The translations under genes were made by a program, and so were the position numbers. The notes beneath the pieces are model-generated. The model made no database searches and was not told the origin of the DNA. It worked only from the letters and a program-made list of their open reading frames with translations. This document shows, one piece after another, positions 7,363 through 63,054 of a stretch of 64,000 nucleotides of DNA. Source of the DNA: Macrostomum lignano (lineage: Eukaryota); the NCBI GenBank assembly GCA_002269645.1, contig NIVC01003799.1, forward strand, positions 1 to 64,000, written 5' to 3'. The stretch's first letter is position 1. Each line of letters opens with the position of its first letter.

Positions 7363-8694
7363 GCCGATGACGTCACTGCTGATGACGTCACCGCTGATGA
7401 CGTCACTACAAAAGTTGTGCCGGGAAGTGATTGGGACGAAGCGGAGGAGCGATTGAAACTTGCCGAAGTGATTAGACAGCACGGATTGGTTCCGGTCAAC
7501 AATGACCTCGAGGTTAGTCACGTGACTGCTATGCTGTGCATCGGTGAGTCTGACTTTACAGGCTGACTTTAAGATTTTGAGCTTAGAGCATCAAGACTCG
7601 CTCAGTTTATGATTGCTCGACCCTAATGCCTGACTCACTTTTAATCTAACCTCACTGCTTTTTAATGGCCTAATTCTTGACTCGCTTGCCTTACCGACCC
7701 AATCCTTAAGGTACTAACTGCCTATTGACCTACTTGACTCCTTGACCCACTGACTGCTCACTGATTCACTTGGTCAAATCCTCGACCTACTTATTGATTT
7801 CTCACCGTCCCACTTGACGCAACACTTGACCCATTGATTGCACTGACCCACTTGACCCAATCCTTGACCTACTGATTGTTCACCGACCCACTGACCCACT
7901 TGACCCAATCCTTGACCCATTGACTATTCACCGACTCACTGACCCACTTGACCCACTGACTGTTCACCGACCCACTGACCCACTTGACTCAATCCTTGAC
8001 CCACTGACTGTTCACCGACCCACTGACCCACTTGACCTAATCCTTGACCGACTGACTATTCACCGACCCACTGACCCACTTGAACCAATTCTTGATCCAC
8101 TGACTGTTCACCGACCCACTGACCCACTTGACCCACTCCTTGACCCACTGACCCACTTGACCCAATCCTTGACCCACTGACTATTCACCGACCTACTGAC
8201 CCACTTGACCCAATCCTTGACCCACTGACTGTTCACCGACCCACTGACCCACTTGACCCAATCCTTGACCAGGCTCTCGCTACGTCGCCAAGGACTTGGC
8301 CACCCTGGAGGCGCACGGTGTCAAAGCCATCGTCAATTTGACGCCAGACGTGCCGAACTACTTCGCCGACAAGTTCGAGTACCTCCGGCTCAGCGTCGAG
8401 GACTCGCCGTCGACCGACCTGCGCCGGGAGCTGCCGGCCCTGTGCGAGTTTGTCGACGCCCAGCTGCGCCGCGGCAGTCGAGTGCTGCTGCACTGCCACG
8501 CCGGCATCTCTCGGGCGCCGTCGTTTACCGTCGCCTACCTGACGGCCGGCCGCGGCATGAACCTCGCCGACGCCTGCGCGCTGCTGCTCAGGTCGAGGAG
8601 TCACGTCAATTTGACGAACTTCGAATCCCAGCTGGCCTTGTTGGAGAGGGAGAGGCTGCTGGACTCGGCTGGGCGCGGGGGTCTGGATGAGTGA
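7363..8694 (+). CDS. DUSP19-like: Atypical dual-specificity protein phosphatase (5' end unresolved)
   Basis: Exons 7363-7543 (G|GTGAGT donor, phase 1) and 8273-8694 join to give EVSHVTAMLCIGSRYVAKDLATLEAHGVKAIVNL...VEDSPSTD...LLHCHAGISRAP. Has an intact CX5R catalytic loop and general-acid Asp, and no rhodanese domain is seen. No upstream ATG exon was identified. Confidence 0.85.
7730..8270. repeat. ~48-bp degenerate minisatellite in DUSP intron
   Basis: CACTGACTGTTCACCGACCCACTGACCCACTTGACCCAATCCTTGACC units running directly into the acceptor AG at 8271-8272. Confidence 0.9.
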
Positions 8695-18894: not shown

Positions 18895-19091
18895 ATGCGC
18901 CGTCAAGGAGGCTGCGCGGCTGCATCGCCACCGAGGTTGCTGGTCCGTTTTTGTCTGCTGCTTTTGCTGGGTAAGTGATGGAGCTTGAGAAACTTAACTC
19001 CAGCGGAGCTCAAAAATCAATGATTGATTAATCGCTTGTTTCCATAGCGACAAGAATAATGGCTTCAGAAGCTGGGTCTTTCTCTCTTTGT

Positions 19092-19123
<32 letters not shown>

Positions 19124-22100
19124 GCTCTCGTCGGCCAGCCTTCTTCGTCGCTCCATCGATCACCTGAAAGTGAAGTCTGGAGCTGGGAAGCCACATGCAG
19201 GGCGCTCCGGGGACAAGAGGACTAACTGCTTAGGATTTGAAACTGCTGCGCCGTCTGAAGTACTCTGGGGCACTCTGCCCCCCCCTCTCAGTGCTCTCTG
19301 AATCGCTCAATCGAACGAAGGAAATGCAATTTCAGCGGGTGACCAGCTTCAACCAGTTTCAAGCACTTGGCCCGGCCGCTCCCTCCGGCTGTTCTTTTTC
19401 TGTCCATGTTGTGTTGCAGGAGCATTGTCGTGTGTTTATCGCTTCTGTGTTTACCGAGAACTCAAACCTGCTATATGGTGCAAAGTGACGTTTATTGAGT
19501 ACAGATAGAGCTTAGTATGCTGCAGTATTTAAATTTCCTGAGTCAAGGATGCGCTGTGCTCAAACCGCTTCAGGCTGCGTCAGAGCCGCCAGCGAATCGG
19601 ACTGGCGGCCGAGGCCTGATGAGCAGGAGGAGTGGTCGCCGGGCGATCACCGCTGGCCGGTGGAGAAGCGCCTGACAACCCAGCTGCTGAGCCGCTACGC
19701 GCAGTGGGGCATTGTCGGCCGGCCGGTTGTCAACAGCTCAGACGTGATGACTGTCCGGCTGGGCCTGGCCCTGATTCAGATTCTTGACCTGGAGGAGAAC
19801 AAGCAGATGCTGCGAACCAACTGCTGGTTGAGATTCGTGAGTTCCATATTGGCTTTTGACACTCGGGACTGAATAGGGAAGGCTGCAATTCAAGAATATG
19901 CAAATACGAGGCTGCACCTGACTTGCGAACACCAATCTAACATGATGATTAATAACACATGTGACAACCTTCCACACCATTTCCAGACCTGGCGGGACAA
20001 CCTGCTGTCCTGGGAGAACTGGACCGAGCCGGAATTCCGCGCCATCCGGCAGATCCGGGTCGCACCATCGCAGATCTGGACGCCGGACATCAAGTTGTAC
20101 AATTTGTGAGGCTCGCCAATCAGTTTTTGATGTTGATTTATACAAAAACTACCAAGAGAGAGAATTTCTATCGTCATTTAAAACAATGCTTTGCTCTAAA
20201 CCTAAAACCTTGAGCAGTGCCGACGAGAGAACCATGGAGATCAGGGAGGCTCGAGTCGTCGTGGATCGCAGCGGCGAAGTTCTGTGGATTCCGCAGGCGT
20301 TGCTCAAGACCACCTGTCAGGTCACCATTATGCACTTCCCGTTCGATACGCAGGTGAATGTCTCTGTGACCTGTCTTGTCTGTAATTTCTGCGGCTAACT
20401 GTTTTCAGCTTGTGTCTCGCTAGCCCTCTTATTTAGTGAAGCCAGCTGTTTTGAGCAGTCAAGCGATTAATGGATTATCCAAAGTAGCTTTCCGCAAAGG
20501 GCAGAGCAGCCTCTCTGCTAATCTTCAGTGCTGATCTTCAGTCCCGATCAAAAATACCAGTTAAGCAGAGTTGGTCCCGTTTTGGAATGTTGCAGCTCAG
20601 TTGACTGCTTGCGTCACCTCGCAAGTGAAACTTGAGCTTGAGCATGTGACTCTCGCTTCAAAGTACCTGCAAGGTTCGATTCCATGCTTGTGTACAAAAA
20701 TTTGGCCTAGGGATTGGCATGCTTCTCCACATTCAAGCCCATTAAGTGCGCAAATGCATGGACATGACTATAACCATCTCCTCAGCTCTGCTGCATCCGG
20801 TTCGGATCGTGGACCTACGACGAGCGTCAACTGCTGCTGGACTGGTCCATGACGGACCTGCGACTCAACGACACCTACTCCATCCAGAAGTTGCTGCCGT
20901 TTGTCGACTTCAGTGATTACGTTGAGAGCAACGAGTGGGAGACGGACGGCGAGAGCGAGATGGACGTGGCGGACCCAGACGACCGGATCATGCAGATCCG
21001 CAGCGGCGTCACCTACCGGCACGAGCCCGCGCATGACTGGCTGGTCCGGCCGGTGCAGAAGAAGTTCCGCCTGCTGGAGTACCGCATCCGCATGATGCGG
21101 AACCCTTCGTTCTACGTTGCCATCCTGGTTGTGCCGTGCATCTTGCTGTCCATGCTCACCCTGGTTGTCTTCTGCCTGCCTCCTGAAGCACCAGCCAAGA
21201 TGCTCTTGGGTGAGGAGCTGTTGAGTTCCCCGATTGTTCTGTAAAGTTTATATAATTGGGATTCCTAACTCCGCCTCCAAAGTACTCGTACATGTAACTC
21301 AAAAAAGCCCTGAAAACCAAACGATTCCATGCAGGCATGAACATCTTTGTCGCATTCTTCATTCTGCTGCTGCTGCTTGCCGAACTCATTCCCAGCGCAG
21401 TGGAGACTTTCCCGCTGATCGGTAAGCACACAGTGAGTCAGACATGTAGGATTGGTAAGCATACAGTGAGTCAGACATGTAGGATTGGTAAGCATACAGT
21501 GAGGCAGACAAGTAGGATTGGTAAGCATACAGTGAGTCAGACATGTAGGATTGGTAAGCAGACAGTGAGGCAGACAAGTAGGATTGGTAAGCATACAGTG
21601 ATTCAGACATGTAGGATTGGTAAGCATACAGTGAGTCAGACATGTAGGATCGGTAAGCATACAGTGAGTCAGACATGTAGGATTGGTAAGCATACAGTGA
21701 GTCAGACATGTAGGATCGGTAAGCATACAGTGAGTCAGACATGTAGGATCGGTAAGCATCCAGTGAGGCAGACATGTAGGATTGGTAAGCATACAGTGCA
21801 TCAGACATGTGGGATCGGTAAGCATCCAGTGCATCAGACATGTGGGATCGGTAAGCATCCAGTGCATCAGACATGTAGGATCGGCAAGCATCCAGTGAGG
21901 CAGACATGTAGGATCGGTAAGCATCCAGTGAGTCAGACATGTAGGATCGGTAAGCATCCAGTGAGGCAGACATGTAGGATTGGTAAGCATCCAGTGAGGC
22001 AGACATGTAGGATCGGTAAGCATCCAGTGAGGCAGACATGTAGGATTGGTAAGCATACAGTGAGTCAGACATGTAGGATCGGTAAGCATCCAGTGAGGCA

Positions 22101-24953
22101 GACATGTAGGATTGGTAAGCATACAGTGCATCAGACATGTGGGATCGGTAAGCATACAGTGAGTCAGACATGTAGGATCGGTAAGCAGACAGTGAGGCAG
22201 ACATGTAGGATTGGTAAGCATCCAGTGAGTCAGACATGTAGGATCGGTAAGCATCCAGTGAGGCAGACATGTAGGATTGGTAAGCATACAGTGAGTCAGA
22301 CATGTAGGATCGGTAAGCATCCAGTGAGGCAGACATGTAGGATTGGTAAGCATACAGTGAGTCAGACATGTAGGATCGGTAAGCATCCAGTGAGGCAGAC
22401 ATGTAGGATTGGTAAGCATACAGTGCATCAGACATGTGGGATCGGTAAGCATCCAGTGCATCAGACATGTGGGATCGGTAAGCATCCAGTGCATCAGACA
22501 TGTGGGATCGGTAAGCAGTGCATCAAATTTAACTCAAATTTAATAAATAAGTCACAATTGCAGGTCGGTACTACTGCGTCAACATGGGCATCATAACGCT
22601 CTCGACTTTTCTAGTCACAATTATCGTTAATCTGCACTTTAACGGCGGCAAAAGCGGTCCGATGCCACCTCTGCTGAGACGCGTGAGTTGACCTCATCTA
22701 TTTTCCTCTCCCTGCTATTTTCAGTTTCCCTCCCGCCTTCCCTCGGCTTCTCCCAGACCTGCTTCCTGTCGCTCACGACTCGGCATGAAGGAGGCGGCGG
22801 TGGCCCCGGGACTTCCCTGCAGCTCTCCTCAACTTTCACTGCCCGCTGAATCTCTGCCGCTTAAAACCGGCGCCTCAAACCCGGCTACCGAGGAGGCTGC
22901 CGAGTTTAACGGCTTCTCCTGCCTATTCAGGACAAAAACTGGGATCACGAATTCCCGTCGTTGCCCGGCTGTGGCTGCCACTCTTGCAGATGAAGAAAGC
23001 TCGGGAGAGAAGCAGAGAACAGCCTCCTATGGGGCAGTCTTCATGTTAATAAAAAATCGGAAACTGCATCACTTCATTCAAAAATTTAAATAGATTTAAT
23101 TATTATGATGTTATGAGAGCTTTGAACCGAAAGTTTTACCAAAGCGATGCGATCCGATAGCTGGCACGATGCAGCCCTGTGATATTCGGAACTCAGAAAG
23201 TCGCAACTCGCCTGAGTCTGCCCTCCCGGAACAAAGTTGGCGTCTCTATCATTTCCCGTTGCTTCGGGGAATGGCGGCAAAGTGAATTATTGCCCCTACC
23301 TGCCCCACCCCGTCCGCCTCTCCGTGATTGCCGAGCTTCGCTTCGCCACCTTCCTCTCTCGTGCTCGGCCATCGCGCCGGTCGCATCCGCTCTCGGCCTC
23401 TCCTCAAAGGCTTTCCTCCCTCCATCCAGCTCGAGCCGACTTCGCCTTTTTCCTGGCTTTCACTAGCGCGAGACGCCGCCGAGTCAGAAAGGGAGACGGT
23501 GGGGGGGCGGAGAGGCATCGGGGAGGCTTCCTCCCGGCGAGATTGACGAGGCTGGGCGGCATAAAGGAGGAACTGCACGGCGGGGATGGAGAGAGGAGGC
23601 AGTGAATGGGCCGGCATAAAGAAGAATTAGGAGCCTGGCGCAGATCCCCCCACCTTTGTAGGCTCGGGCTCCTTTCTCTGTCGCCTCGTCCGCCCCACTT
23701 CAGCCCTGCTGCTGTCCTCTTGTTGTCATCGATTTCCCAATCACCGCCCGCATGGGCCATCGTGCCCTCAGGTGGACCGGCCGGCCTCACAGCGGGGGCG
23801 GGGCGGCGGATTAATCATTAGTGCAGTTCCTCTCGCTCGTTTCTTGCTGCGCTTACACAGAGGCGCTCCATCTGAGATGAGGCGATCATCATTATCCAGT
23901 GTGCCCGAGTCGGGAGACTGGTTAGCTGCTGCACTCCGCATCCATCCGGTTGGGATTTGAGCTCAAATGAGCAACTTTCAAGCCCGAATCCTGGCTTGCC
24001 GTCAATCTGAGCTCGTACTATGCAGTGCCCGGCTTATTCTTGTCTTTCAAACCTCACTACAGAGCCTGAAATTTCTTTTGACGCGGCGCGTCTCCTTTGA
24101 TCTTCTCTTCCTTGATTAAATTTCCTGCTGAGTTGTGTGTCCCCAGAAGTTCCCACTCGATAGCCCGACCGGGCGCTGCTATCAGACGTCCTGATGATTC
24201 TTCTTACGAGATGTCCGGCCAGAAAGCCTCCAGAGACACTACTTGAGTGAGTAGAAAGTAAGACATTTCCCCACCCTCCGTCTGCAGATCATGATCGAGG
24301 GCCTCGGCTGCCTGCTGCTGGTCCGCTGCCGGGCCCCGCCGCCCAATGACCCGGTGCAGCGGCGCGGCAGCGCCGACTCTGCCGGCCAGGCCGCGGGAGT
24401 ATCGGCTGCTGCCGCGTTGCCGTCGACATCTGCGGCAGCGTCATCGGCGGCGACGTTTGCAGTGTCGGGAAGCGTCGCGGGTCCATCCGGCTGCTCAGCC
24501 GGTGGTCACGGCGGCGGCGGCGGCGGCGGCATCACCAAGTGTCGCAACTTTCGTATCGCGGAGTCGTCGACGGCGAATCACCGCGGCAGCGGCAGCGGCC
24601 TTCTGGGAGTTCGCAAGGCCTGGGCGGCCGTTGGCGACTCCAGCCGACGGATGCCGCACGTCGGTTTGCTGCTGGGTTGCCCGCCGCATGTTGAGGAGGA
24701 TCTGCAGGAGATCAGCCGGCTCATCAGGATGTTCCTCGGCAAGAAGAAGGCCAGCGATGTGGCCAACGTGATCTCCATGGAGTGGCGGACACTGGCCCGG
24801 GTGCTGGACCGCCTGTTCTTCGTGACCTACCTGGTCCTCATCGCCACCTTCATCCTGCTGTTTATTCCCGCCCGGGTGCAGACCGTCCGCAGTCCGCCGT
24901 GCGGTGGCTCCGCGCGCAGCTGCGGCGTCGGCTGCAGACTGGGACCGATGTAG
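18895..24953 (+). CDS. Nicotinic acetylcholine receptor-family Cys-loop channel subunit, non-alpha type with anion-type M2 motif (8 exons, ~629 aa)
   Basis: Exons 18895-18970, 19574-19836, 19987-20105, 20218-20353, 20786-21209, 21335-21421, 22564-22682, 24288-24953; all phases match. Signal peptide, WTPDIKLYN, Cys-loop CQVTIMHFPFDTQLC, FGSWTYD, M1 YVAILVVPCILLSMLTLVVFCLP, M2, M3 YYCVNMGIITLSTFLVTIIVNLH, and M4 EWRTLARVLDRLFF. Confidence 0.95.
21418..22518 (+). repeat. 33-bp minisatellite (~33 units) beginning at the exon 6 donor of the nAChR gene
   Basis: Unit AT(C/T)G|GTAAGCAT(A/C)CAGTGAG(T/G)CAGACATGTAGG; the first unit overlaps the true exon end (ATCG|GT at 21421/21422). Confidence 0.97.
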
Positions 24954-36967: not shown

Positions 36968-46025
<9,058 letters not shown>

Positions 46026-48772: not shown

Positions 48773-51700
48773 TCATGCACAGACATCACCAGCTTCATCT
48801 GCAGCCTCCATTTGGACCGGCGGCTGCGGCGGCTGCGACTTCTGGTCCCGGTTTAGTCGAAGCCTCTGAAGCCGCCGACTTCTCGAATTCGGCGAAGCCA
48901 GCGCCTGCATCCGCAGGTGCTGCAGCTCCGCGTCTTTGCGCTGACGCTCGTATTTCCAGTTGCGCTCCACGTCTGAAATTTGGGAAGATGACTTGTAGCG
49001 AGAAAAACTGCAGTGAGGCCAAGTGGGAATCGGCAGTCTTACACTGGTAGTGCGGATTCCTTGGTGCCCAGCGCAGCTTCTCCCAGGCGAACAGGAGCGC
49101 CAGCAGCAGCGCCAGGCAGACCGCCAGCGCCAGCAGCTGCAGCCGGTTGGCAACGAAGAGGGAGCGGGCCACCACCTCCGGGCTCTGTGGATCTTCGGGT
49201 GGCTGAAATGCGAGACAGACATCCGCCTCACTGCCAGTGTGCTCAGATCCCCACTCCCGCAGACACCTGCCTCAATGCCATGCAGTGTGCTCAGATCCCC
49301 ACTCCCTCAGACACCTGCCTCACTGCCATGCAGTGTGCTCAGATCCCCACTCCCTCAGACACCTGCCTCACTGCCAGTGTGCTCAGATCCCCACTCCCTC
49401 AGACACCTGCCTCACTGCCAGTGTGCTCAGATTCCCACTCCCTCAGACACCTGCCTCACTGCCAGCGTGCTCAGATCCCCATTCCCTCAGACACCTGCCT
49501 CACTGCCCGTGTGCTCAGATCCCCACTCCCACAGACACCCGCCTCACTGCCAGTGTGCTCAGATCCCCACTCCCACAGACACCCGCCTCACTGCCAGTGT
49601 GCTCAGATCCCCACTCCCGCAGACACTCGCCTCACTGCCAGTGTGCTCAGATCCCCACTCCCTCAGACACTCGCCTCACTGCCCGTCCGTTCAAAAGTGA
49701 AGCAAGCAACTCAAATTCTTATGCCTTAGTCATAGCATGAGGCTTTGTGCAAACTTTTTTATAATTATCAGGATTCTTTGGGAAAAATCTAGGAAAAGAA
49801 GAGTAACACAGGAAATAACTTATTCTGATAACTGAAGTTTGCTGGCAGTCTGTAGTGCACAGACTCGAATGAAAAGAAAAGGAATTCGAGAAGATTTAGA
49901 CAACTGATGAAAGGCCTGCAGTCTGAGTGGGGGGGGTAGCGAGCTTCAGCTGATCAGCAGATAAATAAGTGCGGATGGACAGCCGCGACAGAAGCCAGAT
50001 CAGCCCTGCATGGTCCCACTTAGAGCTGGCCGCAAATGAAAATTTTGCATCCCAGAGATTGGATTTGGCGAGCGAAGTTCGCATGCATTCTGTTTTCCCA
50101 TCGGCATGCGGCAGCGGAGAGGATCCGGGATCTCGGGAACTCGCGATGTTGCATCAATGCTGAGTGATCTCGAAGGATGAACAACATTTTTAAATCATGA
50201 GAAATCCCTGAGGATTCTCCTTCAAGTCGAAGCCAGAGCCTTCATCATGTGCAGCTGCACTCGCATGTAACACCTCAGGAGCCATCGCCGACCTCTTCCT
50301 GATAAAATCTCAGACGAATCTATATGAACTCCCACGACTCCCATCCTAATCCCATGGAATCCCACTCGAATCTCACCCGAGTCCCACTCGAATCCACTGG
50401 AAGTCCCACCCGAATCCCGCCCGAATCCAATGGAAATCCCACCTGAATCCCACCCGAATCCCACCCGAATCCCACATGAATCCCACCCGAATCCCACCCG
50501 AATCCCACCCGAATCCCACCCGAATCCCGCCGAATCCCACCCGAATCCCACCCGAATCCCACCCGAATCCCGCCCGAATCCCCCCCGAATCCCACCCGAA
50601 TCCCCGAATCCCACCCGAATCCCACCCGAATCCTCTCGAGTCACCCCGATCTCCTCGTCCGCGTGCGCCAGCCCGGCCAGCCGTCCGTAGACGCTGAGCT
50701 GCTGTCCGAGGAGGCGGCTGGCAAGACACTCGGACAGTTTGTCGGGCAGGCCGCGGATGAGGAAGCCCCGCAGAGTGGGCCGCCTAACGAGCATCGGCTG
50801 GGAGACGCCGGCGGCTGCGGAGGCCCGCAAGCGGTGCGGGTGCTGCTGGCGGACGTGAAGGTACATGAAATGCTCCATCAGGACGCCGTGCGGAGGTTGC
50901 GAGATCCCCTGAGTGTCGTTGGACGGCGAGGACAGGCGGCCCTTAGGAGGCGACGACGCGGCAGCAGAAACCAGATCGGTCCAGGTGGGCACGACTGCGA
51001 TGATCCGAGAAGCATGAAGGGATCATGAAGGGAGAGACATGAAGGGGGAGGCGTGAAGGGAGAGGCCTGAAGGGAGAGGCGTGAAGGGAGAGGCGTGAAG
51101 GGAGAGGCGTCAAGGGAGAGGGAACAACCAAGCTTCATCACCAGACTCAAGCCGCCTCACCAACAGGGGCAGAACCGAACTCGTAAACCAAGCTCTCCTC
51201 GTGCGATCCGTCCAGCACAATCATCTGCAGTGCGAGCAGGGTACCAATGAGAATGAATGAGTAGCACAGGTATTATTGCCACGCGAAAATGCGCTGCAAC
51301 TGCCAAAACCAGCCTCACCCCCGCATCGATAAGTTTGGCGTCATCAAACTGCTGCATGCCCTGAGCGCTGAGCGCCGCAGTGATGCCAGCGGTGAACATT
51401 GACACGGCAACCAGGCCAAAGCTGATCCAAGCGAAGGCGAACAAACGGCCGCACACTGACTTGGGCGACCGATCACCGTAGCTGGGCGACGGGGGTTGAA
51501 TGGGCATGTTGCGGAGTAAGGTGGGTGCTAGCGGAGTGAGGTGGGTGCTAGCGGAGTGAGGTGGGTGCTAGCGGAGTGAGGTGGGTGCTAGCGGAGTGAG
51601 GTGGGTGCTAGCGGAGTGAGGTGGGTGCTAGCGGAGTGAGGTGGGTGCTAGCGGAGTGAGGTGGGTGCTAGCGGAGTGAGGTGGGTGCTAGCAGAGTGAG

Positions 51701-52739
51701 GTGGGTTCTATCAGAATTTGGTGGCTATTAGAAATTTACTATATTGTGATTGGAGTGGAGTGGGTGGTTCTAAACTTCCAAGCAAAGCCAATTCCAAACC
51801 AAATTACTTACCCAACAGTAGTCATGGTGATGAAGGCCCACCAGCAGCCCTCCCAGAAGCCGCGCACGAACGGCCTGGGAAATTCTTGCGAGTTGCGCAG
51901 CCGCTCTAGCAGCCAGATGGCGATGCCGGCGTAGCCGCAAGACAGCAGGATGACAAGCAGCAGCGGCCAGGCCTGCGCCACGGTGCGCAGCTGCCACGCG
52001 CCGTCGTCAGCATGCGGGCCGCCAGTTGTGTCCAGCCAGACCGCTCCTGGAAGTGAGGAGGTTCTGATGGAGACGGGCGTCGCTGGCCTATGCAGAGCCC
52101 ATTAGATGGGACATTTCTAATAACCGACTAGGTGCACAGATAAGGGCACAGATAAGGGCACTGATAAGGGCACTGATAAGGGCACTGATAAGGGCACTGA
52201 TAAGGGCACTGATAAGGGCACTGAAAAGGGCACTGATAAGGGCATTGTTGAGGGCAGTAATAAGCATCTCTTAATTTAATCTAATAAGTTAAATAAGTTA
52301 AGATCTGTGTTTGAGTTCTTAATGCTCAGTGGCTTCCTTTCAGACGTAAAATTGCAAACATCGGCCTTCACAAATGTCCAAGAAAGGCCAGACCTGGCGA
52401 CCTGGCCACAGGCAGGAACTGCACCGCGGCCAGCCGGTCCATCAGCGGAGTCCAGGTCGCCGGGAACCCGACGTTGCAGTTGCCTTCGGCAGTGGCGGCC
52501 AGCAGCCTGCTCTCGCTGCTCAGCTGGTGCAGCCGGTAGCTGAAGGCGCCGGGGCCGCGCCATTCAGCGGCGCACTGGTCGAGACCGGACCGCGCCAGGT
52601 CCCAGAAGACACCCTCGATGCCGTCACTGAGGTCGCCGATGTCGCCGCCGCTGATCGAGAGGTTGGCAGCCCGCTGCTGCGGCTGGCGCCAGTCGGAGAA
52701 GGGTGGCTGGCTGTGGAAGCAGATGTCCAGCACCTGCAT
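48773..52739 (-). CDS. GluR0/AvGluR1-like ligand-gated channel: S1-M1-P(TTVGYGD)-M2-S2-M3 plus cytoplasmic tail (N-terminus and one junction unresolved)
   Basis: Exons 52739-52394, 52046-51812, 51481-51319, 51224-51161, 50994-50645, [unresolved segment ~50300-50225], 49202-49043, 48972-48773. S1-like VLDICFHSQPPF...IEGVFWDLA; M1 AWPLLLVILLSCGYAGIAIWLLE; pore GFWEGCWWAFITMTTVG|YGD; M2 LFAFAWISFGLVAVSMFTAGITAAL; S2-like MIVLDGSHEE...GVLMEHFMYLH; extra TM LQLLALAVCLALLLALLFAW. Confidence 0.85.
49225..49685. repeat. 44-bp intronic minisatellite
   Basis: CTCACTGCCAGTGTGCTCAGATCCCCACTCCCTCAGACACCTGC units. Confidence 0.95.
50335..50640. repeat. 11-bp intronic minisatellite
   Basis: CCCACCCGAAT units. 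Confidence 0.93.
51015..52245. repeat. Three short intronic arrays in the channel gene (14-bp 51015-51120; 20-bp 51520-51708; 12-bp 52140-52245)
   Basis: GAAGGGAGAGGCGT, GTGGGTGCTAGCGGAGTGAG and GATAAGGGCACT units, each in a different intron. Confidence 0.9.
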
Positions 52740-55824: not shown

Positions 55825-58703
55825 TCAGAACTCAGGCTGCGGACACCAGTTGGACTCAAAAACGAGTCGCTCAAAGACCAGCCGCTCCGGTGACCAAAGC
55901 GGAGGCGCATCCTCGGTGTCGCTCCGGTGACCCGGCATCCCGGTGTACCTGTGCGGCTCCACCGGCAGCGGCCAGATAGACAGGGCCGCCAGCCGGTCGG
56001 CATACAACCCGACAGCGTCGCTGGACCAAAAGTGCGGGCTGACGCCCGAGGCGGCAGGCAGCAGCTCATCAACAGGTAGCAGACGGTCGGGCAGCGAGCG
56101 CAGGCTGAGCAGCTTCCTGGCGCCCGACAGGCTGAGCACGTAGGCCACCGTCCAGTGTGAGTAGTTCGGCCTCACCAGCCAGCGGCTGCCCGGCACCCGG
56201 GTCTCCGCGCCCGCTAGCAGCGGCTTGCGGCCCAGGTACAGCAGATCCCAGGCGGGCAGGGCGTCGGCTTCGGCGAGCGCCGCCTCCGCCAGCGCTTCGA
56301 ATTCGGCCGACAAGTCGGCGTCGTCCTCCAGAACGATGGCGCGGGCCAGCCGGAGCCGACGAATTCGCCGCCAGACAGTCCGATGGCTCATCAGGCAGGC
56401 GGCTTCGCCCAGAGTCAGCGGCCGGCCGGTTGCGGGATCCCGGTAGCCGGGCAGCTGCCGCAGCGGTCTCCGGCGGCGTCGGCGACGAAGGCTGCGCCAG
56501 TCGACTGCGCGCACCGGCTGATAAGGCCAGCCGGCGTCCGACAGGGCGGCAGACAGGCGAGCAAGGCGCTCCGGACGGCGCGCGAGGCCAATGATAAACA
56601 CGGGCGGCGGATCCCGATGCGGATGCGGATGCGGATGCGGATGTGGATGCGGATGTGGATGCGGATGCGGATGCGGATGTGGATGCGGATGAGGATGCGG
56701 ATGCGGATATGAACGCGGATGCGGATGCGGATATGGATGTGGATGAGGATGCAGATGCGGATGTGGATGCGGATGAGGATGCGGAACAGGCGTCGCCAGC
56801 TGATCCCGCAGGTCGGTCAGCAGGCGTCGGAAGGCGCCCCGCTCCAGCAGGGCTGCGGACAGGCCGTCAATCGACTCCGGAGATGGCGGATAAAAGCCGT
56901 ACACTCGTCGGTTGTCAATGCGAGGCCGGAGCCGCCGGGCAACCCAGTAGAACAGCGGCAGGTCGTCAATGGGCCAGCTGGCCGGATAGTCGGCAGGCGG
57001 AGGGTGCAGTGCGACGTCCAGCCGGGTGCGCAGCAGCACGCAGGTGTGCAGCACGGCGGCTGGCTGCAGTCCAACCCAGCCGGGCTGGCGGGCCTGCACC
57101 CTGGCGTAGTCCCGGCCGCGCCTGTAGAATCCGTCCGGGCCGATGGCTGACCAGAAATTCGCGGCCAGAGAATTCGGCCGGCCGGTGAGCAGCAGCGGAG
57201 CGACGGCTGGGCGGCCGAGAGCGGCCAGGGCGGACAGGGTTGTCGGCTCGGTCAGCAGCGCATCGGCATCTAGCAGAAGCAGGAAGTCGAAGCCGAGTCT
57301 GGTGGCAGCAGTCAGGGCTCGCTGACGAAGGCCCAGCAGGTGGCGCATGCGGGCCTCCGGCCAATGCAGCTGGTCGGTCTCGCCAGGGTAGGAGGAGGGC
57401 TCCGTCTCCTCCTGAGAGCGGGGAAAGCAGCCAAACTCTTGTAGCGCTACTGCCAGCAGTATGGTTGGAAACTTAGGCCCCAGAATGCCTTAGAAGCTTG
57501 ACTAAGTTACGATTTGTGTGACTAGCCAAAGCTACTTAAATAATGCTCGAACTGATCAAATGCGACTCGTCTTTGGGCTACTTTAGGCCGAGTTAGCCAG
57601 ACGTAACAGCGGCTCCATTGAGAGCTCTTCTTTTAATTGGATGGCATTGGGCAGGGGGTTACTGCAGGGCCTGCGTTCATGTTGGGGTGGGTGGTGCTGG
57701 GCAGGGGGTACTGCAGGGCCTGCGTTCATGTTGGGGTGGGTGGTGCTGGGCAGGGGGTTACTGCAGGGCCTGCGTTCATGTTGGGGTGGGTGGTGCTGGG
57801 CAGGGGGTTACTGCAGGGCCTGCATTCATGTTGGGGTGGGTGGTGCTGGGCAGGGGGTTACTGCAGGGCCTGCGTTCATGTTGGGGTGGGTGGTGCTGGG
57901 CAGGGGGTACTGCAGGGCCTGCGTTCATGTTGGGGTGGGTGGTGCTGGGCAGGGGGTTACTGCAGGGCCTGCGTTCATGTTGGGGTGGGTGGTGCTGGGC
58001 AGGGGGTACTGCAGGGCCTGCGTTCATGTTGGGGTGGGTGGTGCTGGGCAGGGGGTTACTGCAGGGCCTGCGTTCATGTTGGGGTGGGTGGTGCTGGGCA
58101 GGGGGTTACTGCAGGGCCTGCGTTCATGTTGGGGTGGGTGTTGCTGGGCAGGGGGTTACTGCAGGGCCTGCGTACATGTTGGGGTGGATTATGCCTCTGT
58201 TATGCCGTTGGACTTTTGCAACCACACTATTCAATCTGTTCGGACCAGTCTCCTTCAATTATTTTCTACTCAGCGCCTAAGTTGGGTTTTATTCCCATTG
58301 CAAACAAATGGATTGCTAAGAGTTTCGCTTTCTACTTGCTGAATCATTGAGAACAGTTCCGGACTCACCACCAGCTGCACGAAGGCGTACCAGGGTCGGA
58401 GGGCTCGGCACCAGTCGGCAGCCACCGCGGCGGAGCCGTCAGAGCTGTGGTCCGTCATCAGCAGAAGACCGAGGCGACGTTTCGGGTAGCGCTGGCGCCG
58501 CAGGCAGGCCAGAGCGCGGCCCAGCGAGTGCGCCTTGTTGCGCGCCGGCACAGCCACCAGAATTGATGGCGCACTAGTTGAGGATGATGAGGCTGATAGG
58601 CTGGCTAAGGAGGCTGAGGCCAAGCCGACAGCCGCTGCGATGCAGCAAAGCAGAAGATGAGGCCAAAGCGAGAGAAGCTGAAGGAAAATGCTTGCGAATG
58701 CAT
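55825..58703 (-). CDS. COLGALT: Procollagen galactosyltransferase (GT2-like plus GT25 domains); start exon not located
   Basis: Exons 58703-58369 and 57411-55825 (phase 0 junction). Hydrophobic leader, [103 protein letters not shown]: the motif order of COLGALT1/2. Confidence 0.92.
57645..58185. repeat. 49-50-bp G-rich minisatellite in the COLGALT intron
   Basis: GTTGGGGTGGGTGGTGCTGGGCAGGGGGTTACTGCAGGGCCTGCGTTCAT units. Confidence 0.97.
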
Positions 58704-60165: not shown

Positions 60166-63013
60166 CTAATTAGTCTTCTTGACCCCGGCATCACCAGCTG
60201 CGGCCGCGGCCGTCTCGGCCAGGAACAGCCGCCTGTCCAAGGCCACCCTGACAGACGCGGGCACGTCGCTGATTGACAGGTAAATCAGAGCCCCGGCCAG
60301 CAGGATGAGGTGCTCGATGATGAAGGCCGCGGCAACCACATAGCGGCCCATGCCGGCAGCGATGATGGCCTCGGGCGCCGCGTCGGCAATCACGGAGTCG
60401 TACAGGGCGGGCAGCCAGGCCGCCAGCTGCTCGGAGGACACGCAGATGATCACCGCGTTGGTCAGCGCAGCCAGGCAGGTCTGCGCCGCCAGCACCGACT
60501 GCCAGGCCGCGGACTGGCGGGCGCCTCCCGCGGGAGCCACCGGCCGCCTTCGAGAGGGGTTTGGGAGAGCGAGAGGATTATTCGGACCGCGAATCTCCAG
60601 TCAGGAACACCAATTATCCACAGATGTAGCGAAAGTCATTAAAATCTCACCCTTTATGGTCCACAGATCCCAATTTAATCCCCAATAAGGAATCTTCACT
60701 CTCTCCGTCTGGTTTAAAGATAAATAATGGGTCACCTGGTCACAAAGCAGAGCCCCAGTGGGTCACCGGGTCACAAAGCAGGGCCCCAATGGGTCACCTG
60801 GTCACAAAGCAGAGCCCCAGTGAGTCACCTGGTCACAAAGCAGAGCCCCAATGGGTCACCTGGTCACAAAGCAGAGCCCCCAGTGGGTCACCTGGTCACA
60901 AAGCAGAGCCCCCAGTGGGTCACCTGGTCACAAAGCAGAGCCCCAGTGAGTCACCTGGTCACAAAGCAGAGCCCCCAGTAGGTCACCTGGTCACAAAGCA
61001 GAGCCCCCAGTGGGTCACCTGGTCACAAAGCAGAGCCCCCAGTGGGTCACCTGGTCACAAAGCAGAGCCCCAGTGGGTCACCTGGTCACAAAGCAGAGCC
61101 CCAGTGGGTCACCTGGTCACAAAGCAGAGCCCCAGTGGGTCACCTGGTCACAAAGCAGAGCCCCAGTGAGTCACCTGGTCACAAAGCAGAGCCCCAATGG
61201 GTCACCTGGTCACAAAGCAGAGCCCCCAGTGGGTCACCTGGTCACAAAGCAGAGCCCCAGTGGGTCACCTGGTCACAAAGCAGAGCTTGTAGGCGTCAGA
61301 CCGGGTCTCCACAGCGTTGGTGACGATGGCCAACAAGGAGGCCAGCGGGAAGGAGGAGGCGAACAGCAGGATGTAGCCATGCTGGATGCACATCTCCAGG
61401 TAGTCGTCGAACTGCTCATACTTATCGCTGGATACTTCAGCTAGCAGGGTCTTGTCCGTGACGCAATTGTCAGCCCGAGCGTCTTGAATTGAATCAACGG
61501 CGTCGCCTTCTTGAAGTGCCGGCTGCTGCTGCTGTTGCTGAGGAGGCTGCTGATCGGCGTCCGCCTTCTTGGCAGCAGCGTCGCGGAGTCGCCTGGCCCG
61601 GTCCTGGGCGAGCAGCAGGCAGTAGGGCAGCACCAGCTCGGTGGCGAGTCGGCGGAGGCAGTCGGCCACGAACAGGGTGAACAGCGCCGAGCGAAGCGCC
61701 AGCACGTCGAGCTCGTAGAAGGCCAAGTAGAGCGGGGCGGCGTAGTAGTCGAACGCCTCCAGGCAGTAGCGCTTCAGCACCTGCGGCGGGCACGGGGAAG
61801 TGTGGGTGAAGCGGGAAGTGAGTAGGTAAGAGAAAAAATATAGATAGGAGAGGACAGGGTGGATAAGGGAGGAGAGGGTGGCTAAGCGAGGAGAGGGTAG
61901 ATAAGCGAGGAGAGGGTAGATAAGCGAGGAGAGGGTTGATAAGCGAGGAGAGGGTAGATAAGTGAGGAGAGGGTAGATGATAAGCGAGGAGAGGGTAGAT
62001 AAGCAAGAATTAGATAGATAAACGAGGATAGGGTGGATAAGGAGTGGGTAGAGGAGAGGGTAGATGATAAGCGAGGAGAGGGTAGATAAGCGAGGATAGG
62101 GTGGATAAGCGAGGAGTGGGTAGATAAGCGAGGAGTGTGTAGATAAGCGAGGAGTGGGTAGATAAGCGAGGAGTGGGTAGATAAGCGAGGAGTGGGTAGA
62201 TAAGCGAGGAGAGGGTAGATAAGCGAGGAGTGGGTAGATAAGCGAGGAGTGGGTAGATAAGCGAGGAGTGGGTAGATAAGCGAGGAGTGGGTAGATAAGC
62301 GAGGAGTGGGTAGATAAGCGAGGAGTGGGTAGATAAGCGAGGATAGGGTGGATAAGCGAGGAGTGGGTAGATAAGCGAGGAGTGTGTAGATAAGCGAGGA
62401 GTGGGTAGATAAGCGAGGAGTGGGTAGATAAGCGAGGAGTGGGTAGATAAGCGAGGAGTGGGTATATAAGCGAGGAGTGGGTAGATAAGCGAGGAGTGGG
62501 TAGATAAGCGAGGAGTGGGTAGATGATAAGCGAGGAGTGGGTAGATAAGCGAGGAGGGGGTAGATAAGATAAGACGCTACCTGTGCTAAACCTTGCTAAA
62601 GAGTAGAATATAAAAAGTGCGGTAGTGCAGAAGCAGTGAAGAGTGGCCCCAAAACCTCCCCAAGCTGCCCACCCACCAGAGCGGACTCGTGCTCGGCCAC
62701 GGTGGGATGATTCTCCCATTTAGTCAGAGCCTCGGCCACCCGGCGGAACAGCAGGCGGTTGAGCACGAAGACGCCGGCGGAGTGCAGCACGGCGGCCAGG
62801 GTAGCTCGCCAGGCGCAGGTGCGGTCGAAGACGCGGCCGGGGCCGGCCTGAGCCGCCAGTACGGCGATGTGGAAGGGGTTGGTGTATTTGAACCTGTGCA
62901 CCGGCTCCACCATGCCCTGCAGATTCAGGCTGCACACGGTGTAAGCCAGTGCCACTAGCAGCATAGCAACGGTTGCTATGCCCGAGCAGGTCTGCTTCAG
63001 ACGGCGGCGCCAT
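60166..63013 (-). CDS. Anoctamin/TMEM16 (ANO10/TMEM16K-like), last three exons; 5' part beyond the window
   Basis: Exons 63013-62677, 61780-61269, 60547-60166 (phases 0 and 2 match). Motifs LTKWENHPT, YEQFDDYLEMCIQHGYILLFASSFPLASLLAIVTNAVETRSDAYKL, RRP, and FIIEHL are anoctamin hallmarks. Confidence 0.92.
60726..61287 (-). repeat. 31-32-bp minisatellite built from the anoctamin exon end plus its donor
   Basis: Sense-strand unit CTCTGCTTTGTGACCAG|GTGACCCACTGGG(G); ~18 copies. Confidence 0.97.
61850..62575. repeat. 19-bp intronic minisatellite
   Basis: GTAGATAAGCGAGGAGTGG units. Confidence 0.95.
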
Positions 63014-63054
63014 CTGTTTTTGTAGAATAAAATGCTATTCAAATTATTTCAGTG

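Follow-up and report, generated by a model that had tools for sequence, protein, structure and literature searches.

A candidate non-alpha subunit for chloride channels gated by acetylcholine in Macrostomum lignano

The receptor gene and its exons

We analysed a 64-kb stretch of Macrostomum lignano DNA (contig NIVC01003799.1, positions 1 to 64,000 of the forward strand; below, the window), in which a nicotinic acetylcholine receptor (nAChR) subunit with an anion-type pore motif had been predicted. A Cys-loop receptor gene is located on the + strand at 19.5-24.95 kb. It was found via stop-free segments carrying receptor motifs and has at least seven exons. The seven exons of our model have GT-AG at every border, form a single open frame of 612 codons, and were all matched in a tblastn search with 63 homologues. 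Pore positions were numbered from a HMMER alignment to human alpha7, in which M1, M2 and M3 are free of gaps and LPPEAPAKMLLGMNIFVAFFILLLLLAELIP stands opposite the alpha7 segment.

19549-19836, + strand: exon 1, the first confidently coding exon, its 5' limit provisional, found by tblastn of homologues; homology from about 19660, GT donor at 19837
19987-20105, + strand: exon 2, loop A WTPDIKLYN-, AG/GT boundaries
20218-20353, + strand: exon 3, loop E plus the opening part of the Cys-loop (...FPFDTQ), with C169 at 20315-20317
20786-21209, + strand: exon 4, from the second Cys-loop cysteine (20789-20791) and loop B (FGSWTYDE) through M2 positions 0' to 4'
20942-20995, + strand: loop-F insertion of 12 residues (exon 4)
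21005-21082, + strand: lengthened loop C without cysteines (exon 4)
21104-21178, + strand: M1, followed by the M1-M2 linker (exon 4)
21191-21199, + strand: codons CCA GCC AAG, Pro(-2') Ala(-1') Lys(0'), an anion-type selectivity motif replacing the cationic Gly-Glu-Lys of alpha7
21210-21334, + strand: intron 4, 125 nt, GT...AG, phase 1, inside the Gly4' codon
21335-21421, + strand: exon 5, M2 from 4' to 23' (GMNIFVAFFILLLLLAELIP), then the beginning of the M2-M3 loop, SAVETFPLIG; GT donor at 21422
21422-22563, + strand: intron 5
22564-22682, + strand: exon 6, M3 (YYCVNMGIITLSTFLVTIIVNLHF), then the beginning of the intracellular loop
24288-24953, + strand: exon 7, the low-complexity M3-M4 intracellular loop, MA helix, M4 (EWRTLARVLDRLFFVTYLVLIATFILLFIP) and the stop codon

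The spliced protein contains the Pfam domains Neur_chan_LBD (PF02931, 3e-45) and Neur_chan_memb (PF02932, 2e-25). The Cys-loop has the form C-x13-C with FPFD (CQVTIMHFPFDTQLC, residues 169-183), and all four segments M1-M4 were located. The predicted product has the architecture of a Cys-loop (pentameric) ligand-gated channel subunit. The N-terminal helix VEKRLTTQLL lies in exon 1, as does loop D, TNCWLRF. The junction of exons 1 and 2 (NCWLRF/TWRD) agrees with the M. lignano protein P0013, that of exons 2 and 3 (LYNF/ADER) with the consensus of the clade described below, and the product of exon 5 is 93% identical across this exon to M. lignano P0039. In the alignment the exon junctions reproduce the homologue sequence with zero indels.

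There are no stops or frameshifts in the seven exons, and 107 of the 114 alignment columns conserved at 90% or more are retained. The seven departures are mostly conservative, and five of them are common to M. lignano relatives or another homologue. As modelled, the gene is intact and bears no sign of decay. The tblastn search with the 63 homologues found no second receptor gene and no alternative M2 exon in the window.

The original prediction joined the pore motif to the rest of M2 across an intron. From 21191 the + strand reads P-A-K-M-L-L-G, with the first base of the Gly codon at 21209, and then a canonical GT at 21210. Read-through past this point meets a stop after 11 codons (GEELLSSPIVL*). 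The AG at 21333-21334 precedes GC-ATG-AAC-ATC-TTT-GTC..., translated as (G)MNIFVAFFILLLLLAELIPSAVETFPLI(G). Intron 4 was called because read-through stops, whereas splicing restores the M2 consensus of about 200 homologues without an indel; the spliced peptide of 21191-21421 matches the predicted one letter for letter. The position of the intron gives no independent support, since the M. lignano paralogue P0007 (locus L001, 6001-8074, NIVC01000543.1) has its ligand-binding domain (LBD) and M1-M3 in one exon and its M1-M2 junction is intronless. The predicted protein of the closest M. lignano relative reads through ("MLLGE..."), which is only suggestive as regards the intron. Intron content differs sharply among paralogues of this subfamily, from six introns in the window gene to the single exon for LBD and M1-M3 in P0007.

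Two candidate signal-peptide exons lie upstream of exon 1.

18895-18970, + strand: candidate exon A, MRRQGGCAAASPPRLLVRFCLLLLL, strong donor G/GTAAGT, phase 1
19406-19484: candidate exon B, MLCCRSIVVCLSLLCLP..., weaker donor GTGACG

Exon A is in frame with the phase-1 acceptors 19525/19526 and 19573/19574, and exon B with 19573/19574. Taking exon A as the signal-peptide exon is speculative.

A tandem repeat stands at the start of intron 5.

21417-22517, + strand: 33-bp minisatellite, 33.4 copies with 92% matches in Tandem Repeats Finder (TRF), beginning within the final five bases of exon 5

Its units copy the exon-5 donor: TYGGTAAGCA occurs 33 times at an exact spacing of 33 nt, against 0.22 expected. 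The donor copies all share one phase, and when read in the exon frame the array has no stops (repeated GKHTVSQTCRI). If a later copy were used, the M2-M3 loop, a critical element in gating, would gain multiples of 11 residues.

Pore lining, family and subunit type

The residues facing those of alpha7 at selected M2 positions are as follows.

2': L in the window gene, S in alpha7
6': N (21340-21342) in the window gene, T in alpha7
8': F in the window gene, L in alpha7
9': V (21349-21351) in the window gene, L in alpha7
13': I in the window gene, V in alpha7
20': E (21382-21384) in the window gene, E in alpha7

Pro-Ala in place of Gly-Glu (PAK versus GEK) and the predicted numbering, with Val at 9' and Asn at 6', are thus borne out by the alignment. 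The M1-M2 region was parsed in 210 fetched proteins. The selectivity motif is PAK in 178 of 204 parsed homologues, AAK in 18 (including SmACC-2 and ShAR2beta) and SAK in four. Over these 200 sequences the M2 core is strongly conserved.

4': G, 98%
6': N, 88%
7': I, 90%
8': F, 96%
9': V, 84%
10': A, 86%
11': F, 96%
12': F, 96%

Position 13' in the clade is V, L or I, and position 20' is E, D or K. The window gene carries GMNIFVAFF, which is the clade signature G4'-(M/I)5'-N6'-I7'-F8'-V9'-A10'-F11'-F12', and its M2 departs from the consensus at two places only, 13' (Ile instead of Val) and 21'-22' (LI instead of ST). For comparison, type B of Lymnaea has PAK-MQLGMNIFVAFFVLLLLLAESTP, and the window gene PAK-MLLGMNIFVAFFILLLLLAELIP. 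Peculiar to the window gene are, at the M1 end, a Cys instead of Trp, at -3' an Ala instead of Ser, and at 21'-22' LI instead of ST; all three are also present in M. lignano A0A1I8F2P7. Two nematode SEK/AEK sequences in the set have S6' and L9', as in vertebrate receptors.

The pore lining had been predicted to be unusual and the gating of this subunit altered. Neither claim holds for this gene in particular, as the same residues line the pore throughout the clade, Lymnaea type B included. On the aligned sequences, N6'/F8'/V9' is a clade-wide hallmark and nothing special to this gene; any "altered gating" could at most characterise the family. The N6'/V9' pore is compatible with normal function in those clade members that have been assayed. 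Together with PAK, the N6'/F8'/V9' combination is conserved across Spiralia and should not be flagged as unusual.

Outside the window, the annotated Dimorphilus gyrociliatus protein P0040 carries two tandem copies of M2 (LGMNIFVAFFFLLLLLANNTPP..., followed by GMNIFVAFFLLLLLLADSTPP), as if the gene predictor had fused two alternative M2 exons.

The first database search returned 63 proteins, and all homologues were nAChR-like. The top relatives are flatworm proteins (E-values 1e-146 to 1e-116) from Fasciola, Opisthorchis, Clonorchis, Schistosoma, cestodes and Macrostomum lignano itself. Two of the flatworm proteins, those of Cryptocotyle, are labelled "acetylcholine-gated chloride channel" (ACC) by their source. 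Mollusc, annelid, nemertean and brachiopod proteins rank next. The M. lignano relatives share 58-72% identity, the best match having 72% across 47% of the receptor length. The cloned SmACC-2 of S. mansoni (AHC04398.1, 508 residues; MacDonald et al. 2014), recorded as an "acetylcholine-gated chloride channel subunit" and a member of the P0033 cluster, is 40% identical over the full length (1e-121). The cluster of the top match, P0006, lists ShAR2beta, whose sequence (AAK, Met in loop B) fits the SmACC-2 group. A profile search with alpha-type members recovered the Lymnaea stagnalis nAChR types B, K and I; type B (ABA60381.1) is 37% identical to the window protein over the full length (4e-92). 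The 60 PDB matches listed are all nAChR chains (4e-60 to 1e-36), the best being alpha7 at 4e-60, in agreement with the predicted nicotinic type of the subunit. None of these 60 best matches is a solved structure from the PAK clade. The window gene falls outside the nematode ACC-1 family, which is of the GABA/glycine-like branch, its best matches being nicotinic.

A neighbour-joining tree was built from 452 columns with Kimura distances and 200 bootstraps, the two nematode SEK/AEK nAChRs serving as outgroup. The window gene is nested within the PAK clade, apart from these two cation-type receptors. It belongs to a flatworm-only non-alpha subclade of 16 flatworm sequences with 100% bootstrap, at the base of which it is sister (100%) to M. 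lignano A0A1I8I5N8. The placement with the SmACC and Lymnaea anionic receptors, proposed earlier as a check, thus puts the gene in the flatworm ACC group.

The Pro-Ala schistosome subunits and the chloride-selective nicotinic subunits of Lymnaea have been described as one clade within the nAChR tree, separate from the ACCs of C. elegans (MacDonald et al. 2014, PMC4055736). A 2026 survey of molluscs reports an "Inhibitory-CL" nAChR clade with anion-type motifs (PMC13174522). By its predicted sequence, the window gene is a member of this known spiralian anion-type nAChR clade, which includes Lymnaea types B, I and K and the SmACCs. The family was already described in 2005 (Lymnaea) and 2014 (Schistosoma); the window adds one gene to it, which has little weight alone.

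The clade contains two kinds of subunit. Its alpha-type part consists of mollusc, annelid, nemertean and brachiopod proteins and one flatworm group, and has a loop C of normal length with Y-x-C-C-x-E-P-Y-P-D. The flatworm group comprises a 915-residue PAK protein of S. mansoni, probably SmACC-1, and an M. lignano member; the S. mansoni protein has the N6'/F8'/V9' pore as well. All other flatworm proteins, namely SmACC-2, ShAR2beta, the Cryptocotyle "ACC" pair, several M. lignano paralogues and the window gene, are without the Cys pair and carry both insertions. In the window gene the loop C region GVTYRHEPAHDWLVRPVQKKFRLLEY contains no Cys, and so lacks the YxCC of alpha-type subunits. By alignment, its loop C is about 10 residues longer, and about 12 extra residues lie upstream, after SNEW.TDGE. 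The Tyr of loop A (KLYNF), the Trp of loop B (GSWTYDE) and the Trp of loop D (NCWLRF) are retained. The two aromatic positions of loop C align as Tyr and Phe; this alignment is uncertain because of the insertions.

Judging from these features, the window gene encodes a non-alpha subunit of the SmACC-2/ShAR2beta subfamily, and an alpha-type partner is probably needed. The non-alpha character was overlooked in the original prediction and matters more for function than the Val at 9'.

Proposed function and alternative explanations

The gene quite probably encodes a flatworm non-alpha subunit of nicotinic-type acetylcholine (ACh)-gated chloride channels. Five subunits would form a pentamer, which by homology probably combines the window subunit with an alpha-type ACC subunit. 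ACh would bind at the subunit interfaces, to which the window subunit would contribute at least the complementary face, its loop D Trp being conserved. We propose that the open pore would prefer chloride, since Pro-Ala, adjoining the Lys(0') ring, takes the place of the cation-attracting Glu(-1') ring. Passage of chloride would then cause the cell carrying the channel to be inhibited by ACh.

Both ACh gating and anion selectivity are taken over by homology from relatives. SmACC-1 expressed alone gives a halide (iodide) flux activated by ACh and nicotine, RNA interference (RNAi) against five Pro-Ala subunits makes larvae hypermotile, and SmACC-2 is described as non-alpha (PMC4055736). The same paper calls the Lymnaea channel only chloride-selective. 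Anion selectivity of the window subunit is credible, not from the motif alone but because relatives with the same pore conduct anions. As for Lymnaea type B, van Nierop is said to have found in 2005 that it forms a working anion-selective ACh-gated channel.

Several points weigh against this function. Position 13' is hydrophobic (Ile) and position 20' is Glu, as in cation channels, and there is another Glu at -4'. The M1-M2 linker is not one residue longer, unlike that of the glycine and GABA-A receptors. Selectivity is therefore not readable from first principles. The loop C position of Tyr195 in alpha7 is occupied by Phe. The ATG at 19549 yields no signal peptide, whereas most homologues begin with one. 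We found no functional datum, in the literature on SmACCs, for a member of the non-alpha flatworm subclade expressed alone, and the role of SmACC-2 rests on RNAi and localisation. The window gene itself is known here from genomic sequence.

A channel permeable to cations, or poorly selective despite PAK, is what the Glu residues at -4' and 20', the hydrophobic 13' and the linker without an extra residue would suggest; Galzi's engineered alpha7 of 1992 (cited in PMC9874803) reportedly required a change at 13' too. It is nevertheless highly improbable, since relatives with the same pore conduct anions, Lymnaea type B reportedly among them, and SmACC-1 gave the iodide flux (PMC4055736). Scarcely more credit can be given to a special variant in which V9' and N6' alter gating relative to other ACh-gated chloride channels. 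These residues do depart from the L9' and T/S6' of cation-selective nAChRs (alpha7, and S6'/L9' in the nematode SEK/AEK outgroups), and substitutions at 9' of vertebrate nAChRs alter agonist sensitivity and desensitisation. However, the same residues are found in 84-96% of about 200 sequences from flatworms, molluscs, annelids, a nemertean, a brachiopod and a bryozoan, Lymnaea types B and K among them, and the N6'/F8' pore occurs in an orthonectid too, though there with L9'. Least probable of all is an unexpressed or decaying copy. The gene is seen in genomic DNA, with its 5' exon represented by candidates, and the 33 in-phase donor copies in intron 5 could disturb splicing; but the seven exons have no stops or frameshifts, the splice sites are canonical throughout, and the conserved columns are kept to the extent given above.

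Another possibility is that the subunit belongs to a channel of this clade but is not gated by ACh through its own principal face. It would then serve obligatorily in a structural or complementary capacity, or take part in a receptor for some other ligand. The missing YxCC, the longer loop C and the 12-residue insertion upstream of it speak for this, as does the loss of the loop B Trp in members of the subclade (GSMAYD in SmACC-2, GSLTYD in Schistosoma group 2). Homomeric function of SmACC-2 is not reported (PMC4055736). On the other hand, the window gene keeps the Tyr of loop A, the Trp of loops B and D and both aromatics of loop C, and RNAi against SmACC-2 gives the same hypermotile, cholinergic-type phenotype as against SmACC-1 (PMC4055736). 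We regard this possibility as unlikely; its complementary-subunit version is compatible with the proposed ACh-gated chloride channel.

It is conceivable, though doubtful, that the flatworm non-alpha subclade, with its lengthened, basic, Cys-less loop C and extra loop-F segment, has a ligand-binding site of new character. Binding of ACh, or of a different ligand, might then occur in these subunits despite the missing Cys pair, or they might determine the pharmacological properties of heteromeric chloride channels; the Tyr of loop A and the Trp of loop B are kept in the window gene and in the Schistosoma A0A3Q0KEK5 group. Similarly, the N6'/F8'/V9' pore with Pro substituted at -2' and a hydrophobic 13' may be a structurally unsolved route to an anion-conducting nicotinic scaffold. 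As a relative of the schistosome non-alpha ACC subunits from a free-living and laboratory-tractable animal, the subunit could offer a safe model in which to study how a channel class proposed as an anthelmintic target is built and responds to drugs.

Other features of the window and comparison with known receptors

Tandem repeats are abundant in the window: 102 rows of TRF merge into 56 arrays with periods of 4-149 bp, covering 35% of the 64 kb, compared with 19% in the 14-kb M. lignano locus L001. Several arrays are free of stops in at least one frame, inflating lists of open reading frames. Matches to other genes, and repeat arrays near them, lie in the following regions.

8269-8691, + strand: open segment with a match to the dual-specificity phosphatase catalytic domain (Pfam DSPc, 7e-24), motif HCHAGISR
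38400-38580 and 42521-42931, + strand: Ser/Thr kinase exons (Pfam Pkinase, 1e-7 and 5e-11) with HRDLK and a CaMK-like C-lobe
38041-38353: 30-bp repeat array just upstream of the first kinase exon, stop-free in the same frame
51160-52101, - strand: potassium-channel-like pore WWAFITMTTVG (Pfam Ion_trans_2, 2e-5), probably ion-channel exons
55828-57489, - strand: open segment of 554 codons with a glycosyltransferase family 25 domain (8e-22) split by a long His-Pro run
61268-63048, - strand: anoctamin (TMEM16) exons (Pfam 1e-27 and 8e-10)
61841-62568: 19-bp repeat array, probably intronic, through which the open segment of the anoctamin runs

The glycosyltransferase family 25 protein, used as a single-exon query of 429 residues, had only two matches, at 30-35% identity.

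Among the named receptors, SmACC-2 (AHC04398.1, Smp_142690) and ShAR2beta of S. haematobium (AAX59989.1) belong to the same 100%-bootstrap non-alpha subclade as the window gene. They are without vicinal Cys, have the loop-F and loop-C insertions in common with it, and carry the M2 core (M/I)NIFV(A/G)FF.LLLLLA. However, they differ in having AAK, Met for the loop B Trp, and Lys at 20', whereas the PAK, loop B Trp and Glu 20' of the window gene are as in the Schistosoma A0A3Q0KEK5 group.

The Lymnaea types B, I and K and the probable SmACC-1 fall in the same PAK clade and have the same pore. SmACC-1, and reportedly the Lymnaea types, are functional ACh-gated anion channels. These are alpha-type subunits capable of forming homomers, and their loop C has Y-x-C-C and the normal length; the window subunit is non-alpha.

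Vertebrate alpha7 has the same fold and shares with the window gene the Tyr of loop A and the Trp of both loop B and loop D. It differs in GEK, T6', L9' and the YxCC loop C, and is cation-selective. Engineered anionic alpha7 needs an inserted Pro, E-1'A and V13'T. In the window gene Pro substitutes for Gly without insertion and 13' is hydrophobic, so that this three-change recipe is only partly present.

The nematode ACCs (ACC-1 family) have the same proposed role, that of an ACh-gated chloride channel, and a PAR/PAK-type motif. However, they belong to the GABA/glycine-like branch (PMC4055736), whereas the relatives of the window gene are nicotinic throughout. As far as the sequences indicate, the two are convergent, and not homologous at the subfamily level.

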